In this document: positions 6,112 through 33,100 of the stretch, in pieces
Position numbering within the stretch: the first letter of the stretch is position 1
Layout: each line of letters opens with the position of its first letter
DNA from: Podarcis tiliguerta
Taxonomy: Eukaryota
Direction: 5' to 3' (one strand)
DNA: 64,000 bases
Assembly: GCA_965153285.1 (NCBI GenBank)
Contig: OZ229114.1
Notes under the pieces: model-generated
Database searches by the model: none
Seen by the model: the letters and a program-made list of their open reading frames with translations, nothing else
What the model was told of the DNA's origin: nothing
Position numbers and translations under genes: made by a program

Positions 6112-9100
6112 GTATGTAATATGTTTTTATCTGAATATAAACACCTTTAAATAGATGTGTTTTCAGCTTTGTTTTTAAAGGAAGACATTTGGTAGTTCTA
6201 CTCTGGTTAAATTTGCGCAAAAATTCCTTTAATGTAGGAGAAAGAGGATTATATTACAGGTAAGCAAAGCTGCACCAAGTGATGCAGCTGCAGTTGTTTC
6301 AAATAATAACCCTACACAGTTTTGTTGAATGCCATTTTTTGGTCCTTCCATTTTTAAAACAAGCACTACCTACTTTGCTTATTATGGAGCTCTCTTGAGT
6401 GTTTAGTTCCTTTTCAATGAATTTTATTAGTTTTTGCTATGATTCAAAAAGAATGGTGTTTCAAGAAAAGACACCAAACCACTTGATTAGCATTTTTAGA
6501 GATGAAATGGAGTGCTGTATAAATTGGAATCTCATTTCTACTGATCAGTATTTGTACTGTATCTTTTGACATAGAATCAAGATGTTGTGCTACAAGGGAT
6601 AAAAGTAAAACGTAGATCGAACAAAGCTGTTTAGGAAGTCCATGAGTGGGATCAAGTAATATAACCTTGATCAATGAAACAGGCTTGACAATACCTATGA
6701 CACAAATGGCATAAGGCTTGATGTGAAGTCAACTAGACATGTGATGGTGAAGTTGCATAGACTACAGTGGCTATCCCGATCCATATACTGCCATAACTGG
6801 GGAAAGGCACTGCTAGCCACAGAATTCCCTTGGACCTCTAATGACAAAGGTCTATCTAAACTACATACCTGATTGTTCAGAGGGAGTGCAGTATCTTCAG
6901 GATGTAAGAACCTACCCACAGAGCCTCTTTCTTACCAGGTTTCAAACTCAGTTTGTTGGCCCTTCTCCAGTCCACCACTGCATTCAGGCATAGATCCAGG
7001 ACTTGCACAGCCTTTCCTGATCCAGATGTTAAGGAGGTGTAGTAGATATAGATGTTAAATAGCACTGGGGACCAAATTGTGCCTTGCAGAATCACATAAC
7101 ACAAGTGCAGGAGGCCATAGAACAGTGTTGTCCCACTGTTACACTCCGAACTCACCCACATAGGTAGGAACAATGCTACTGTAATACATTGCCTCCTATA
7201 CTGATCATGAACAGTTGATGTAGGAAGATATGGTCAGTGGGGTCAAAAACCACTGAGAGATCAAGTAATTGTAACAGTGTTGCATTTTCGCCGTCCCTCT
7301 TCTGAGGGTGACAAAGACTGATTCAATCATGAAACCAGGCCTGAACCCAGATTGAATTGAATCTAGACACTCAGTGTACTCAAACAACACTTGCCTGATG
7401 TACTTCATTTGATGGCAGAATTTGCATATTTAGATGTAGAGTTCTATCTAGACCTTTTGCAAAAAAACTTTTTTTCTCAGTGGATAAAAAAATATCTTTG
7501 ATGTTATTTTTGAAGTTTGCATGAATAAATGCATTCATATACTTGAAAGGAATTTCAAGTCATTCATTCTAATCTTTGCCCTCTAGCTTTATTATCTTGG
7601 GCAGATTTCAGTCAGTCTCCTCACTGAAACCTCCAGAAAGAGTTGCCATAAGTTTCTTGGGCAAGGGACTTTGTTGCACAAGCATTAGTGTAAATTAATT
7701 TTCCTGTGATCCTTCCAAAAGGTTCTCTGCCATAACTAGAACTCAGTGCTTTTCCTTCATTTGCTTCAGGAAACTTTTTTCCTTCTGCTAGCTTTTCCAC
7801 TATATTTTTCACTGTCTATGTATAGACATTTTGAGGTTTATTCCTTTAGCTAAAACATTTGTTTAACTGAAATGGGGGTGTAGGGAAATATTGGTTTACA
7901 GGTGCTAGAATTATTTTAGCTGTGTGGTTTTATTTACTGCTGCAGTGTTTGCTTAATTATTTACCTAAGCCCTTTTTTCCTTGTTCAGATTTGGCTTGAG
8001 CCTATGAAACCTGTAATTAAACAAATACGAAGTAAGTATATATACTATTTCTATTAGTGTTTCTTTCTAGAATTCTAGCAACTTTTTGGTGCTATTCTTA
8101 ACATGGCCACATTTGGAAGATTAAGGCAGGATATCTATGTGCTGTTTGCACCCACGTGCAGCCCCTTTATTGCGTCTTTGTACAAGCAGTGAAACCATCC
8201 AGGAAGCCACAGTTAACTGTAGCTTCCTGTTAAGTCTGAACTGAGAACTATGGTTCATGTCTCCCAATAAGCCAGGATTTCAGAGCATACTTTTAACTGT
8301 GGTAAGGTGCATGCAGCTCATGCCTATGTTACTTTATTAAGCCGGAATTTGATTGCCTGACTTTACACATCTTGGTACCCTCCAAAAGTTTTGGGCTACA
8401 GCTCTCATCATTCCCAGCTATCATGGTCAATGGTGAAGATGATAGAATGAATGAATGAATAAGTTTATTACGGTCATAGACCAGAAGAAAAGAAAAAAGC
8501 ATAAAAACAACAGTAGTTTACGAGGGAATGATGGTGTCAATTAAAAGTTGTAAAATTATACATAAAAACAATACACATATGCACACACACCCACACACAC
8601 GCACATATATACTCATATATGCGCTACAATATATGTGTAGACTTTAAAAAAGGGGGGGGGCTTGTCCAAGGGTCAGATCTTTTACTTTTTTACAACTAAT
8701 GCCCTCCGCTTGATCGCGGCCGCAGAAAACTTGGCCACTTTCAGTGTTACTTCTGGGTTTTTATCTCCTAGTAGGATTTTCAGCCGCTGAGATTCAGATC
8801 GACCTGGGAATTTCTGAACGATAGGGGAGATAAACAGTGACCTGATATCCCCGTAGAGGTCGCAGTGTAACAACACATGTGAAGCCGTTTCCGCCTCCTT
8901 CAGACCACATGGGCAAACTCGTTCGGCATAGGGTGTGCCCTCGTATCTGCCCTTTAGTAAGGCAGATGGCAGTACATCAAATCTGGTAAGGGTAAACGCC
9001 CGCCTATATTTTGCGATTTGTAGATCCAGCAGATATGGGGTTAGATTAAACCCTTTTCCATAATCTTGGATAGCTGGATATTTATCTATCTTGCTCATAT

Positions 9101-12100
9101 GGTCCTGAAGCTCTATATCTCCTATTCGCTGGCTCACCATCATTTTAGCCTTTTCAAAACCTGCGGCTATAAGTTCCTGTGGGGAAAGCCCCAGGCCCTT
9201 CAATTTTTCATAAAGCGACAATCTCCATTTAGACTGGAACGGGTCTAGTAAAGTCAATGGAGCCACTCCCACTGGGAAAAATATGAGTTTTAGCCAGAAG
9301 TGAATCTTCAGGATCCATATCCTGGCATTAATAGGGAGCTGACCTACCTCCAGCCTAATGGCAGTGTTGGAGACACAGGTAGGTAACCCTAGTAGGGAGC
9401 GGTAAAATTTAGTTTGTACAGATTCCAGGGACTTGAGTTTTTGGCAATTAAATATCTGGGTGCCATACATCAGTTGTGGAAGTATTTTTGCAACAAAGAC
9501 CTGGGAGGCGGCAGGAACATATTGACCTCCTTTTCTGTAAAAGAATCTTATGATAGCTCTAAAAGATCTTTGCGCATTTACAATGGAATTCTTAATCTGA
9601 TGGCACCAAGATCCCTTCTCATCAAAAATTATTCCAAGATATCTAAAAGATGTTACTTGCTCAATAGGTTGGTTATTAATTTTCCATTTATGTCGGAGTT
9701 TTCTCTTGGGGAACACCATAATTTTTGATTTAGTGTAATTTATTATTAGGTGTTCAGCTTCGCAGTACTCTGTAAGAGCTCGTAAAAGTTTTCTTAGACC
9801 CACACAAGAGAAGGAAATAAGTGCCGCATCATCTGCGTACAAAAGGACTGGGATTGGTATATTGTTTAGGTTTGGGGAATGAGTACTTGCTTCCTCCATC
9901 TTTCCGACTAAGGAGTTTATATAGAAGTTGAATAGAATAGGGGCAAGAACACAGCCTTGCTTGACACCATGGAAACTTTGGATTTCCTTTGATAGGTTCC
10001 CATAACGGTCGCATCTAACACGGATCCGAGTATTTTCATGTAGTCTACGGATAAGAAGCAAAAGACGTCTATCGATGTTTGTGGCATTTAATTTTTCCCA
10101 AAGTCTGTGCCGGGGTATCGAATCGAAAGCTGATTTGAAATCTATAAAGGCTACATAGAGAGAGCCTCCTTTCTTTGAGGTGTATTTCTCCACTAGATGT
10201 TGCAATACCAGTCCTTGGTCTAGAGTTGATCTATGTGCCCTGAAACCAGCCTGGGCTTCCTTTAAGACGTGCTCCTGTTCCAGCCAGTCCGCAAACTTTT
10301 CACGTAAGTGAGTTGCATAAAGTTTGCTGATGATGCTTAAGAGACTGATTGGTCTGTAATTGGCTGGATCAAGTTTACAGCCTTTCTTAAATATGGGAAC
10401 GATGATTGCCAATCCCCAGTCCTCTGGTATTATTGCTGTTTGATCTATGCTGGTGAAAAGGGTGGCAAGGACTGGGGCCCACCAGTCAATATTGGCTTTG
10501 AGAAGCTCAGGAGAGATATTATCTGCTCCCGGGGCTTTTCTATGTTTGAGTGCCTGAATAAGCCTCCTAATCTCCGCAACCGACACCGGGGGCCACTCAT
10601 CACCTGCCGCACACTGTATTAGTGGCTGTGTCAAAGGCAGAGCTGGATATAGAGATTGGAAAAATGCCTCCCAAGTCCCTGCAGGTATAGTATACTCCAC
10701 TTCTGAGGAAGTAGATCGCACTCCATTTGCTACCAGTCTCCAGAAGGTGGCCGAATCTCTCTCTCTGGATGCATCTATTAGGCATTTCCATTCTCTTTTC
10801 TGTGCCAGGAGTTTTTTGTTTTTGATCAGAATTTTATAGTTTCGTTTATCTTCAAACCAGCCCGTGGGGAGTTGGGGTAAATTGGCAGATCTATAATTCT
10901 TGTATTTTTTCAGTAAGTTTAGCTTCATGTCCTGACATTCTTGATCAAACCAGGGTTTGGAGTTTTTATATACTGAAGATTGCCTACTTGGCCTGTTCCT
11001 TTTTTCCTTCAGGGAATCTTGAAGGAGTGAAATTAACTCCTGAAATAAATTTATCTTTAGTTCATGGCTAGAGGAAGTTATGAGGTTTTCTCTCTTAGTA
11101 AGGAATTCCTTTGAGCATAGCCTACTTGAAATTTCCTTATGCAGTTCATCTGTCCATCTGATACGCGAATATCTGAGCTCCAAAGCTGTAGGGCTCGAAT
11201 GCTCGATTTTCTCAGCGCAGGATAAATCCTTTCCCGCAGCTACGAGTGCACTTAATGGCAGATGGTCACTGTCTAAGCGCTCCTCCACTTTGCATTCCAG
11301 AACTTTGTTTTGAAGATCATACGACACGATTATATAGTCAATTGTGGAGGCGCCATTGTTAGATATAAATGTGAATTCTCCGACCTTCTCCCCCTCTGTA
11401 CGGCCATTTAGTATAACCAAGTCCAACTTGTTGACCAAGTGTAGTAGGCATAAGCCGGCATAATTGCAGCCTTTATCCTTTGAGACTCTAGCTGGTATTG
11501 GGTGGGTTTCCTCTATAATGGGGACTGTTTCGTGGAAATGGGCATACAAAGCCTCATCAGATTGTCCAGTTCTGGCATTTAGGTCGCCTGCCACCACTAC
11601 AGAGGCATCAGGAAATTGATTTGATAGTTTGTCAAGATACTGTTCTAACTGAGCCCAATTGTTTCTTATCAATCTTTTCTCTCTTTGTGGGGGTAGGTAT
11701 ACGTTAATCAGCAGCAAGCTGTGGGTTCTCCACTGTACTTGCACAGCTGTGGCCAGATGGTCTAGTGGGTCTAGTTTTTTAAATATGGCCCTTAGCCTTG
11801 TTGAGATTAGGGTAACTAACCCACCTTTAACTCGCCCCCCTCTAGTACTTAAAAGACCTGGGAGGGAGAACGCAGAAAAACCATTTAGCTCCACTTCACT
11901 TGTGCTCCAGGTCTCCTGGAGAAACACAATGTCATGTCTCTGGATGTATTTAGCAAAGGATTGGTCAGAAACCCTCTTTTGCCAACCTGCAATATTCCAA
12001 GTTAGCAAGGCAAGGTTGCACGTTGTCTTGCCAAACATTGATCTTAGTCAATTTGCCTTTAAAAGATTTTTTGGGCCTATCTTTTTATCTGTTAGTTGGA

Positions 12101-15100
12101 TTTCATTCATTTTGGCAATGTCCATAGATGTATTGTCGCCCAGGTACTCAATGGAGTCAATTGAAGGGTGCAGCGTGCTAACATTAGTGATCAGAACTCC
12201 TTTTTTTGGCGAATCTACCTTGAGGTGTTCTATTTGACTGATACCAAGTTCATCCTCATCCAGGTATCTCATGCTGGTCCAAGAGCGCGTTGTGGTTGTC
12301 ATAGGGATGGTTTCCTTCTTAGATGGTAGATTGTTGCTGTCCCTTACGCACTGTGTTAGATCTGTTGCTGTCAGGTTTATCTCTGCAGCTGCAGAGGTAT
12401 TATAAAGGTAGTCTTTCATGGTTGCCATAAGGATGGTTTCCTTCTTAGATGGTAGTTTGTCCCTTGCGCACTGTGTTAGATCTGTTGTTAACAGGTTTAT
12501 CTCTGCAATTGCAGAGGTATTATAAGAGTAATCTTTCATGGGGTCTGTCTTGGCTTTTTCAGAGAGGTTCTCTTTCTTTAATTGGTCCGTTGCCGGTTCT
12601 TCCTCTCTTACTTTTTCCTGAGCATTCATCTCTGTTAGCTTATTTCTAAGGGTCTCCAATCTTCTCAAGATCTCAGATTGGGCAAGGGAAGGCAACAATC
12701 CAAACTGATTTATTAATGCCTTTTCTTCTGGATAGAAGTTATCCGTCCCCTCATTGGGCAGTCTCATCTCCTGTCTTAGTTTCAAGGACCCTTGCTCAGT
12801 ATGTTCCAGTTTGTCTTTTGAGTGTCCTCTCTCCTCCTTTGGTTTACAAGAAAATCTTATCTCAGCTGTCGTAAACTCATCAGGGAACAATTTCAAACAT
12901 GTGCTGTTTTCAAAGAATCTTGTTACCGTTATCCTTTTCTTTAACAGCAAATGTCTTGATCTATATATATATTTAGCCAAGATTTGATCTTTGAAGGAGG
13001 CAATCACTCGCAGAGAGTATCCATTGTAGAATATGAAATCTACTGAGGTAATGTCCTTTAATTTTATTTTCCCTGGCAGCATATCATCTAAAGTATTCAC
13101 AAAATGCACCGAGCGTTCTTCCTGTGTAAGGAAGCCCTTTGGCTTCGGGTAGTTAAGAAATGCTAACTTCCTATCTGCCAACATCAGTTTCCATCCTTTA
13201 TCCTGGGGCAAATCTTGCCCTGCTACTGGCTCATCTTGAGATCTGCCATAATCAATGGTATGGGGTGAGTCTTCTTTAATATTTATGGATCCTTGGGGTT
13301 TCAGCATAGAGCACCCGGGTAGTGATTCCGTTTCCTCACTTGTTTTGTTAGGCAGCGATGATGTTTCTTTCAAAGACTTCAGCTGGATCTTTTTTCCTGG
13401 ATCCACACTGTTGTTCTCTCTGCTGCCATGTATAGCAGGTTTGTTAGAGTTTGTTTTTGATTTTGTTGGGATCAGCTTATATAGTCTTTTCCAGCATACT
13501 TTACATGCACGCCGGTTTATAACAGATTTCCTTGCAATTTTTATGTTCTTACTTTTCTTTTTAATTTCAGCTTTCTTCTTATGGGATCTCTTACTGATGC
13601 CTCGCTTCTTTTGATTTACTTCAATAGGAAATTCAGTTTTAGGGACAGATACATACAACCCTATGTCCTTTCCTTGTTGTAAATGATTTTCCGCTGCTGA
13701 TCCTTGTGTGCACTTGCTGGTCGCTGGTTGCTTTGTATATTCTGGCTCTTGAGGGGTGGTTGGTGGATTGACACCATGAAATTCTGAGCCTTTAGCTTGG
13801 AGGGGATAATTTTCCACTAATGTCAGAAGCAGCCCATTTGTTATTGTTAAGTATTTTTTCATAGCTGCCAGATCCAGATTTATAGAGAGCAGCCAGTCCT
13901 GAGGATAGCAGTCATTGTTTTCCGTCTGGGAGCCCATAGATGAAGTCTGGGATTTCTGGGAGTTTCGGGTTTCTTCCTGTAGCTCTGAAGATAATACCTC
14001 AGCCAAGACTATTTCATGGGCCAGGCTCATTGTATTTCTATTTTGGTTGTTATTCTCCGTGTCCTGTATTCCTCTAGAGAAGGTTGAGTGATCTTGAGCA
14101 GCAGAGGGAAAAGGAAGAGCCTCATCCTGCTTCAACTCAACCATCTCAGCCATCTTTTGCCCGTTTCCATTTCCATTCTCGTTGTCCCTTGTATGTAAAA
14201 GGTATTGCGTGATTTTACTCTGTTTCTCATAACACTCCTGGAACAATGGGCTTGTCGCTATCCCCAGGTCCCTACATTTCTTTCTAGTAAGTACCATTTG
14301 TAAATCTTTGTTGCCAATCAGGGTTATTCTTCCTATTTCAAAAACTATGCCTCTTAGGAAGTCGAAAGCTCCACCCAGCTATAGACTGAGGTCCAGATTG
14401 AGGCAAGATTTGGGATAGCTGTTTGTAGTTTGTAATTTGATAGCTTGTAGTTCGGAGCGTAACACGAACTCTGCAGCTAGTTCGGCGGCCATCCACTATG
14501 TGGTGATACTTCCGGACGGTGTTGGAAAACTGGGAATAAATCACTTGAACACAGGGCGAACTCCCCTCTCCGGCAGCCTCCTTCGACTAGCTCTCCTTCT
14601 GCACCGGCGTCCTGTCGCGTTGGGTCTCGGCTCCCCTCCCCGCCCAGGCAATAAAACTATTAGCTCTAAAACTCTAAAACTATTAGCTTCAAAATCTCAG
14701 AGGGCAGCAAGGGGTTGCTGCTCCCTAGTCAGATTGAGCAGTAAAACAATAAAACACTAACTAAACAATAAAACAATAAAACAATAAAACACTAACTAAA
14801 AGTAAAGAGAAGCGAGGAGGTGATAAAACAGCTGGTAGGACGTTAAAACTAAGAGTTTAAAACCAAGAGGTGGCTAAAAAAAAAAAAACTGCTAAAAAAC
14901 TTAACTGAGAGCAGAAGAATCTGACCAAGCTGCAGCCTCCGTCGCCATCATGGTGAAGATGATAGAAATTTTAGTCCAAGACATATGAAGGACACTGTTG
15001 GGGAAGACCGTTCTAGAGATTTGAAGCAAATGAAGATAATCTGTTTTGCATGACACACAGGTTCACTTAATCAATGGAATTGGAGAACATTCATATGGAA

Positions 15101-30100: not shown

Positions 30101-33100
30101 CCGCTAACTCAATCAAATGGCCCTTACAAAGTTATTTTAGCCTTCCGTTCGCTGAGACTACCCTTATTAATAATAAGACAAAAATGGAAATTCATAAAAA
30201 CAAAAATCATACCCACAAGGGTTTTTGCGGACAGCATAGTAAAACCACTACTTGTGGAAAAAGAGAGAGAGACATTAGATCCAGGAACAAGCTCTACAAA
30301 ATCGCCAGACAAAGAGATGTTGCTTTCCCCACAGAGAACGGAGGAGATTGCCTGCAGTCCACATCCAGGAACGAACTTGGGTGATTCCAGAATATCTAAT
30401 GATGAAAGCGCCCTTATGAATTCATTTGACGAACTACAGTCACAAGAAAAAGAAAAAATAATAAATAAATTAGATAAACTAAGAGAGAAGATGTCTCAGG
30501 CCAAAAGCAAAATAGGAAACAAAGAAATTCAAACCAACAGTGCCATTGGAGGCTCAGTGGACCTTCTCAAATTTAGCCCACAGCCCCAAAATAGGCCCAT
30601 AAAATCCAAGGCAACGATACAGACAATCGTCTCGCCACCCCTATTAGTCAATCTGGAACCAGCTCTTCCGGCACCAGCCGGAATGGTCACACCTACTAAA
30701 GAACAGCAAAATGTAAACAAAATTTCGACACACTCCTCAATGCCTGACCTGGAGTCATCATTATCGGGCGGAGAATCTCTAGTTGACGATTTAGAAGCTC
30801 AAACCGCTATCGATATGGACTGGACAGAAGACCCCTTGGGCCATATAAATAAGATGACATACCCACGGAAGGGAAATCTAAGAATAGTTAAAACTTGTAC
30901 CGACTTAATCTCTGCTCCCCTAGGTGATAAGCTCTCTGATAAAACAAGGGATTTCAGAGAGGAGACCAGACCAAATCAGGACACTACCCCTATAGGACCG
31001 GCTGAGCAGAGCATAATTACAAATAGCTCAAGAGGTACATCTGCGCCAAAAGGAGAGAAGTCATCTACTATTAGTCAAAAGAAAATTACTGACTTCTTTA
31101 AATCTGACAACCCACCAAGGCCAGCGTTCTCCCCTTCTCTATTGTGACTACCCAAACCTCAGTCAAATCCTCCCCCGTTCTCCCTTTTAAGCTGGAATAT
31201 AGCAGGTTGGAAGGGGAAAAAATCTGACCCGGACTTTGTAAAACTAATAAACTCACACCAAGTAATTCTCTTGCAGGAAACATGGGAAGAGGGGAGAGTA
31301 GATATTAATGGTTTTGATGTTACATCATTACCGGCATGCCCGTCTACTAAAGGAGGCCGGCCCAGAGGAGGATTAGTTATAGCAATTTCTTTGAAAATAC
31401 AGGCAAAACTCACGCTTGTAAATGCTTCCACCTTTGCAATTACAGCCCTGATTACGGGGGAAAACTTTGAACTTGTTATAACAAATGTTTATCTTCCTCC
31501 TGGAGGCAATATTGCAGACTTATGCAATAAATGGGGAACCTTGGAGGAACATCTCACTTTTTGCCACTCCAAATACCCCAATATACCCAATGTTATAGCA
31601 GGGGACTTCAACGCTCGCATTGCAACAAACTGGGAGTCTTTAATCAAAGCCAAATGGTGGATAACCCCAGAATTCATTAATGACCTCTCCCTCCATAATC
31701 AAAGACTTTCCAAAGACAAAAGGGTAAATGAAGCGGGAACCCTTCTTTACCAATTGGTACTACGTCTAAACTTAGTGATTCTAAACGGGAACTGCCTGCC
31801 TGACGTACCGGGCGAGTTTACACACATAAGCTCCTCTGCAAACAGTGTCCTGGATTATATATTAGTATCTCATGACATATTCCCCAGAGTTTCCCATTTC
31901 AAAGTTGAAAATATTCATCTGAGCGACCACCTACCGTTGGTCGCCACAATGACTATAGACTGGACCCCAGATGGAAACAGACACCCAACACATCTGATTA
32001 TGAACTCAGTATTGCAAATCAAAAGTGTAAAGTGGTCCGAATTACAGGCCCAAAAATACTCAGCATATTTCCAACAAGGACTAAAACAAGCATATTCAGG
32101 CTTAACCGAGGATTATTATGATTATGACCAAACTTTAAGACTATTCTCGAATCTGTCGGAAGATCTAACGTCTTTTTTCTCTGTCCCGACGCATAAAATA
32201 AATCGAACACAAAGGAAGATAGGTGCATTGTGGTTCAATAGTGCTTGTAAACAGGCTAGACAACTTCTCGGTAACATCTACAAAGAGTATAAAGCCTCCG
32301 GGGCAACGGTCTTGCCAAAAGAATATTTCCAAGCAAAATCGGCCTACAAGCAAATTCAAAAGGGAGCCAGACAGGAATGGCAAGTGAATCAATGGCGAGC
32401 AATCATAGAAGCCTCATCATCACGGAACTCCAGACAATTTTGGCTCCTGGTAAATAAAAGAACTAAAAGATACCCTTTGACTATTATTCCTGCCCCGGTT
32501 TGGGAATCTTACTTAAAAAATTACTTTGCCACAACTGACTGTATTGCTAACACAAGAGATGAATTTCAACATCAGCTTCCCCTCTGGCCCCCCACCGATC
32601 CAGAAGACATCCATGACCTGATCGTTAAACTCAAAACAGGGAAAGCGCCTGGGCCAGACCTGATCCCGGCAGAAGCAATAAAATACCACGCGGACTGGTG
32701 GGCCAAAGTTCTGGCGACCATCTTCGATGCCGTTAACAACTCTGGAATGATCCCGGAAGTATGGAAGGACGCTGTTATCGTTCCAATCCACAAAAAGGGC
32801 TCACCAGATGACCCGGGGAATTACAGAAACATCAGTCTGCTCTCAATAGTGGGGAAACTGTATGCCCGCTTCCTGTTGAACAGACTTAACCAATGGGCCG
32901 AAGAGAAAAAATTAATTGGGCCCGAACAAGCTGGATTCCGCCCAAAACAGTCAACAATTAATCACATTCTAACTTTACAGCATCTTGCCTGGAAATACTC
33001 CACCCCAAAGGGTGGCCAACTCTGTGTAGCATTCATTGACCTAAAGGCAGCATTCGATAGTATCCCCAGGAGCATCCTCTGGGAAAAACTCATCCGCTGG

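Follow-up and report, generated by a model that had tools for sequence, protein, structure and literature searches.

How the second open reading frame (ORF2) of a bicistronic long interspersed nuclear element (LINE) RNA comes to be translated is a long-standing open question, for which the reviews consulted name reinitiation, 2A skipping, and frameshifting, and not stop-codon readthrough (PMC5009743, PMC5972666, PMC3708506). Termination-reinitiation has been documented for SART1 and proposed for L1 (PMC5972666). In mammals, the stop codon UGA followed by CUA constitutes a consensus for high basal readthrough, with LDHB reaching about 1.6%; the context is strongest as UGA CUA G, and as UGA CUA T it still lets ribosomes through in reporters (PMC4359377, PMC12233894). 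Here we discuss a window of 64,000 nucleotides (nt) from Podarcis tiliguerta (GenBank assembly GCA_965153285.1, contig OZ229114.1), to which all positions below refer and which contains two LINEs, termed here LINE A and LINE B, with the emphasis being put on the boundary between ORF1 and ORF2 of LINE A. To judge from its sequence, this boundary is most likely a selected and clade-conserved leaky stop, UGA-CUA, and readthrough giving an ORF1p-ORF2p fusion appears to be the best single explanation for LINE A, one to which we assign a probability of roughly 0.45. In the literature, of which our coverage is incomplete, we came across no description of a LINE whose ORF1/ORF2 junction is passed by stop-codon readthrough, and LINE A, if the proposal is true, may be the first case of readthrough for ORF2 expression in a retrotransposon that lacks long terminal repeats (a non-LTR retrotransposon).

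The in-frame UGA-CUA junction

The LINE A junction, read on the minus strand, is AAG GCA AAT TGA CTA AGA TCA ATG TTT GGC: a single stop separates ORF1 from ORF2, both of which lie in the same frame, and the linker between them carries no further stop, with the predicted readthrough product amounting to 749 + 1 + 3 + 1118 = 1871 amino acids (aa). The minus-strand reading confirmed the original prediction as to the junction coordinates, the shared frame, the TGA-CTA, the length of the product, and the presence of an ATG three codons past the stop. The stop is UGA and CUA occupies positions +4 to +6, with the ideal G at +7 being absent; UGA-CUA is the high-readthrough context published for vertebrates (PMC4359377, PMC12233894).

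Other copies have the ORF1 stop of LINE A too: it is shared by a contig from the same species and by eight ORF1 proteins. The dominant same-species contig (4762 nt, depth 180), which extends from ORF1 across the junction and over much of ORF2, differs from the LINE A copy at 8 of 4762 positions, none of which falls within 12036-12050, while all eight of the ORF1 proteins from full-length contigs end in ...KAN and fall into two subfamilies, with identities of 97% and 90% to the LINE A copy. The TGA-CTA hexamer is likely intact at the junction in two related species as well, as judged by a read comparison that lists all differences for the same-species run and leaves some of those near the junction not shown for the two related species. 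A profile search of 1.84 billion representative proteins returned no natural ORF1-ORF2 fusion among 61 ORF1 relatives, and since none of these exceeds 751 aa, the stop seems to have been retained throughout and never simply lost. This absence of fusions fits a regulated leaky stop, but it fits the separate translation of ORF1 and ORF2 equally well.

Further evidence comes from LINE B, which together with LINE A makes up the whole of their clade within the window, and in which the TGA (31145-31147) and the CTA (31148-31150) are likewise in frame with ORF2, with C at +7. The original prediction held that LINE A shows this junction independently, a view that has to be abandoned: the two elements are homologous, with ORF2s that are 36% identical end to end (1129 columns), with ORF1s that can be aligned with one another (about 24% identity) and with that of a third family, P0065, and with stops at equivalent positions, the distance from the stop to the W in WNIAGW, the motif with which the endonuclease fold begins, being 17 codons in LINE A and 16 in LINE B. 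Because of this homology and positional equivalence, the TGACTA of LINE A and LINE B is, by sequence comparison, a case of conservation at a homologous site and not of convergence. The claim that the flanking codons are unrelated was borne out, as MAFFT could not align them either upstream of the stop or between the stop and WNIAGW. What is found across these two deep families is a stop and its context conserved amid varying flanks, and a hexamer that persists while its surroundings are replaced speaks for function more strongly than convergence could; the hexamer is very probably under selection. Composition gives CTA a probability of 0.0175 and the LINE A hexamer a chance of about 0.4 × 0.0175, or about 0.007, a figure for which LINE B supplies the hypothesis and LINE A the test, and which becomes lower once the shared frame is counted; the window contains 44 stop-to-stop ORFs that reach 100 codons or more, and of these just the two LINE ORF1s end in TGA-CTA.

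These figures bear on the possibility of coincidence, namely that the hexamers arose by chance or hitch-hiking and that ORF2 is made from an internal promoter or subgenomic RNA, by entry resembling that at an internal ribosome entry site, or from an AUG-independent start as proposed for L1, all of which we regard as improbable. By composition, TGA-CTA would turn up at both junctions with a joint chance of about 5e-5, and both hexamers lie in frame and at equivalent positions amid saturated flanks; on the side of coincidence stand the number of families compared, which is two, the occurrence of TGACTA three times in each element against two expected, the ability of L1 ORF2 to start without its AUG (PMC5009743), and the precedent of Tca2, in which a promoter at the junction can mimic readthrough (PMC2194720).

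Public ORF2 relatives of LINE A (P0002-P0005) have identities of 40-63%, and additional relatives were sought with the clade ORF2 alignment. A scan of JGI metagenomes yielded distant LINEs only, 24-42% identical over the matched segments, and a scan of viral contigs yielded no matches. One metagenome contig (L001, PJEL010021824.1) encodes an ORF2 that is 24% identical over its whole length and that is preceded by a 144-aa ORF in another frame; it represents a different type of junction, because its two ORFs occupy different frames. In an ENA entry of 1187 aa (P0003), whose ORF2 is 48% identical to that of LINE A, the 73-aa N-terminal extension gives no indication of an ORF1 fusion, since it shows no similarity to ORF1.

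Proposed readthrough, possible reinitiation, and the downstream hairpin

The occurrence of readthrough, its frequency, and the function of the fusion are all things that we infer, and the proposed course of events would be as follows. The majority of ribosomes would stop at the UGA and release ORF1p, with its RNA recognition motif (RRM)-like domain and long helix, whereas a small fraction, perhaps about 1%, would read the UGA with the help of a near-cognate tRNA and go on to translate the endonuclease-reverse transcriptase, the outcome being the 1871-aa ORF1p-ORF2p fusion, as with gag-pol in murine leukaemia virus (MuLV). Fusion by rare readthrough would set a low ratio of ORF2 to ORF1 and would hold the enzyme on its own ribonucleoprotein. 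In LINE A, the AUG that lies 9 nt past the stop probably adds a second route, termination-reinitiation, leading to free ORF2p. Readthrough would nonetheless be the simplest mechanism common to both families, because LINE B cannot make its endonuclease from an AUG: in its ORF2, Met is absent ahead of residue 266, and the 400 nt past the stop contain no in-frame ATG.

That termination-reinitiation might account for LINE A entirely, with the 40S subunit staying on the RNA after the UGA and restarting at the AUG to give free ORF2p as SART1 or human L1 would, and with the CUA being irrelevant or only slowing termination, is in our view less likely than readthrough, yet it is a serious rival. At 12038 stands an in-frame AUG; it is the earliest in any frame past the ORF1 stop, and it lies 13 residues ahead of the W in WNIAGW, where ORF2 of LINEs with an apurinic/apyrimidinic (AP) endonuclease usually starts; the residues 'MF' with which it begins ORF2 are common to LINE A and P0003. 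Hairpins are present just downstream, and the SART1 restart needs downstream structure (PMC5972666, PMC3708506); reinitiation is, moreover, the sole route so far documented for two-ORF LINEs (PMC5972666). What it leaves unexplained is the presence of UGA-CUA in LINE B too, where ORF2 lacks an AUG. The UGGGA of motif 1 of the calicivirus termination upstream ribosome-binding site (TURBS), an 18S-complementary motif placed 20-70 nt ahead of the stop, is lacking within 120 nt upstream of the stop in LINE A and LINE B alike, and the Kozak context of the LINE A AUG (TCAATGT) is weak, which counts for readthrough. The efficiency of SART1 reinitiation fell when stop and start were separated (PMC3708506), and in LINE A the two are close and do not overlap. 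Of the suggestion in the original prediction that re-initiation at the ATG could occur, the placing of the codon was upheld; the recurrence of its Met in P0003 speaks for the suggestion, and the weak context and the missing UGGGA tell against it.

Both families also carry a predicted RNA hairpin over the L-L-(T/S)-W-N-I-A-G-W-(Q/K) codons at the start of ORF2, beginning 30-39 nt past the stop. In the codon-aligned pair of LINE A and LINE B, RNAalifold recovers 13 consensus pairs, of which 3 are compensatory and none is broken, and the stability of the hairpin tops that of about 98% of synonymous recodings in each family (P = 0.0175 and 0.0165). These observations would also be expected if the hairpin were itself the functional element, acting through ribosome pausing or shunting or through the binding of ORF2p or ORF1p in cis, with the stop context being secondary. 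We consider this very unlikely: two sequences are involved, the 3' arm is fixed by the conserved amino acids A-G-W, the codon identity of LINE A with LINE B shows no significant rise at the 5' end of ORF2 (9/20 against a 35% baseline, P = 0.23), LINE B folds no better than its shuffles in 132-nt windows (z -0.08), and the junction matches nothing in Rfam. A separate, weak stem of 5 bp (AUUGA/UCAAU, minus strand, 12036-12052), which occurs only in the minimum-free-energy fold, could pair the UGA stop with bases immediately before and in the AUG and would draw stop and start codon together.

Several points weigh against readthrough in LINE A. Typical readthrough stimulators sit about 8 nt past the stop, and the hairpin, at 30-39 nt, is thus placed further away than these. 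The +7 position is A, and the in-frame AUG at the canonical place provides ORF2 with a start codon of its own, so that in LINE A, ORF2 would not depend on readthrough. The Met of the 'MF' may itself be under selection, as is suggested by its recurrence in P0003 equally far from WNIAGW though the next ten residues differ. P0003 has 73 open codons upstream of the 'MF' and Leu at the position of the LINE A stop, which makes the junction not uniform within the clade; either the junction lies elsewhere in the P0003 family or the stop was lost there. The comparison of junctions at the DNA level covers two families, LINE A and LINE B, and the support for readthrough comes from sequence. Finally, the gag-UGA-pol junction of Tca2 did not direct readthrough on its own (PMC2194720).

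Extended to the clade, the readthrough proposal would hold that programmed UGA-CUA readthrough is the sole or main way in which these squamate LINEs make their endonuclease-reverse transcriptase, as an ORF1p-ORF2p fusion, with LINE A being an intermediate that also has AUG restart; this extension is possible, and we put it forward tentatively.

Anatomy and state of LINE A

LINE A is a full-length, recently inserted LINE, whose features are collected in Table 1. Its target-site duplication (TSD) and simple-repeat 3' tail, in the absence of LTRs, are those of an AP-endonuclease LINE, as is the layout of ORF2, in which the AP-endonuclease is N-terminal and the reverse transcriptase central. The 3' boundary can be placed to within about 3 nt, because the TTC of the TSD continues the ATTC tail.

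Table 1. Coordinates of LINE A features and of the corresponding LINE B hairpin in the window
Feature	Position	Strand	Remarks
Full-length LINE A copy	8448..14949	-	6502 bp, flanked by perfect 18-nt direct repeat
TSD, 5' side of LINE A	14950..14967		ATGGTGAAGATGATAGAA, 100% identical to 8430-8447
LINE A 5' untranslated region (UTR)	14298..14949	-	short tandem repeats at 14739-14800
ORF1	12048..14297	-	749 aa + TGA stop
ORF1 core domain, residues ~371-466	12900..13187	-	predicted beta-alpha-beta-beta-alpha-beta, ferredoxin/RRM-like
ORF1 long helix, residues ~523-565	12603..12731	-	possible coiled coil, AlphaFold2 model
Tandem duplication in ORF1	12293..12541	-	~120-126 nt units, 89-93% identical, two 40-42-aa repeats
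ORF1 stop TGA (UGA)	12048..12050	-	
CTA right after stop (+4 to +6)	12045..12047	-	+7 = A
In-frame ATG	12036..12038	-	9 nt past stop, weak context TCAATGT
ORF2	8682..12038	-	1118 aa, same frame as ORF1
RNA hairpin, LINE A	11973..12014	-	11-bp stem, begins 33-39 nt past stop
AP-endonuclease domain, ORF2 residues 12-259	11262..12005	-	Pfam PF03372 E 8.5e-14, also PF14529
Reverse transcriptase domain, ORF2 residues 551-804	9627..10388	-	Pfam PF00078 E 8.9e-34
LINE A 3' UTR	8448..8681	-	ends in (ATTC)3 microsatellite tail, 8448-8460
TSD, 3' side of LINE A	8430..8447		first bases (sense TTC) prolong ATTC tail
RNA hairpin, LINE B, same codons	31178..31219	+	

The element is probably a young and active two-ORF AP-endonuclease LINE of a Podarcis-type lacertid lizard, and that the family is live is suggested by the perfect TSDs, the intact ORFs, and the low-level, sense-oriented RNA reads of a related species. 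In a stranded RNA run from that species, 31 reads indicate low-level expression of the LINE A family, and their orientation across ORF1 and the junction is that of sense transcripts, given the usual stranded library. The family reaches high word depth in public sequencing runs of three related organisms, and the 90% protein cluster of ORF2 includes UniRef entries from Podarcis muralis. Vingi, which is reported to have a single 993-aa ORF (PMC3708506), does not fit LINE A, which has two ORFs.

Two side observations concern variation between copies. Upstream of 14643, 4 RNA reads as well as the contigs from two species diverge from LINE A into AGCTCCGGGGATGGCGGAG..., and this departure points to the replacement of the 5' UTR/promoter module at 14643-14949 by another module in other LINE A copies. 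Over 9000-14949, the changes relative to the related-species contigs are strongly asymmetric between strands, with G>A at 32-37 against C>T at 9, and A>G at 17-19 against T>C at 2-3, when counted on the plus strand; on the LINE A sense strand, C/T changes accordingly far exceed G/A changes.

Searches with ORF1 returned neither a Pfam family nor a PDB sequence match, and the ESM Atlas gave nothing usable. In its AlphaFold2 model, the predicted local distance difference test (pLDDT) score exceeds 90 across the core domain, which is followed by the long helix, and the Foldseek matches of the core to ferredoxin-like/RRM folds are weak (E >= 0.003). The core is the best-conserved portion of the ORF1 family in both the ORF1 alignment and the profile search, and the helix motif EE.ALI..F..L...Q.EIL.RL..LR..L is kept in LINE A, LINE B, and P0065. 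The modeled fold suits an RNA-binding, multimerizing LINE ORF1p, this being a putative function. The length of ORF1 among family members is 738-753 aa, and the units of the tandem duplication encode KDY.YNTSA.AEINL..TDLTQC.RD..LPSKKET.

The reverse transcriptase region of ORF2 matches the structures of L1 ORF2p and R2. At least ten public ORF2 entries (P0001, P0129-P0138) are 1070 aa long and begin with a Met where LINE A has GTG (Val49). We take that Met to be an artefact of bacterial-style gene calling, and for this reason these entries are uninformative on the true start of ORF2.

Comparison with known recoding and reinitiation systems

In MuLV, the stop is a UAG, and a pseudoknot follows about 8 nt further on. 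LINE A resembles a gag-pol arrangement of this type in that its frames are in phase and separated by a single stop, with a structural, putatively RNA-binding protein upstream and an enzyme downstream, and, if readthrough occurs, low-frequency fusion would set the product ratio in LINE A as well. It departs from MuLV in having UGA-CUA, with a hairpin 30-39 nt downstream, and in being a non-LTR retrotransposon without a protease, for which reason the LINE A fusion would have to work uncleaved. Were the proposal true, readthrough would explain the scarcity of ORF2 and its cis-preference as it does in gag-pol, and retroelements of different classes would have reached the same recoding solution, with a gag-pol-like solution existing outside the LTR elements and retroviruses.

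A second LTR element, Tca2 of Candida albicans, shares with LINE A an in-frame UGA between structural and enzymatic ORFs, and calls for caution, as its flanks failed to bring about readthrough in reporters and the assay was confused by a promoter at the junction (PMC2194720). Among cellular genes, LDHB, MDH1, AQP4, and OPRK1/OPRL1, with their UGA CUA (G), have the same stop and triplet as LINE A, in a vertebrate host (PMC4359377, PMC12233894); they differ from it in that the +7 position of LINE A is A (C in LINE B) and not G, and that its extension would be a whole 1121-codon enzyme and not a short tail.

Among the LINEs themselves, SART1 and human L1 resemble LINE A in having a bicistronic RNA, a start of ORF2 near the ORF1 stop, and downstream structure (PMC5972666). 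In the UAAUG of the silkworm SART1, stop and start overlap, and in L1 they are separated by a 63-nt spacer (PMC5972666), whereas in LINE A the distance is 9 nt and the ORFs are in frame; LINE A also differs from both in that its sister family, LINE B, has no AUG. LINE B belongs to the same clade and has the same in-frame TGA-CTA, a near-equal distance to WNIAGW, and the same hairpin, but it has no ORF2-frame ATG before residue 266, whereas LINE A has one three codons past the stop. LINE A adds to the LINE B junction a second, deeply diverged family that bears an AUG, and the two together form a natural pair for telling fused from free ORF2p.

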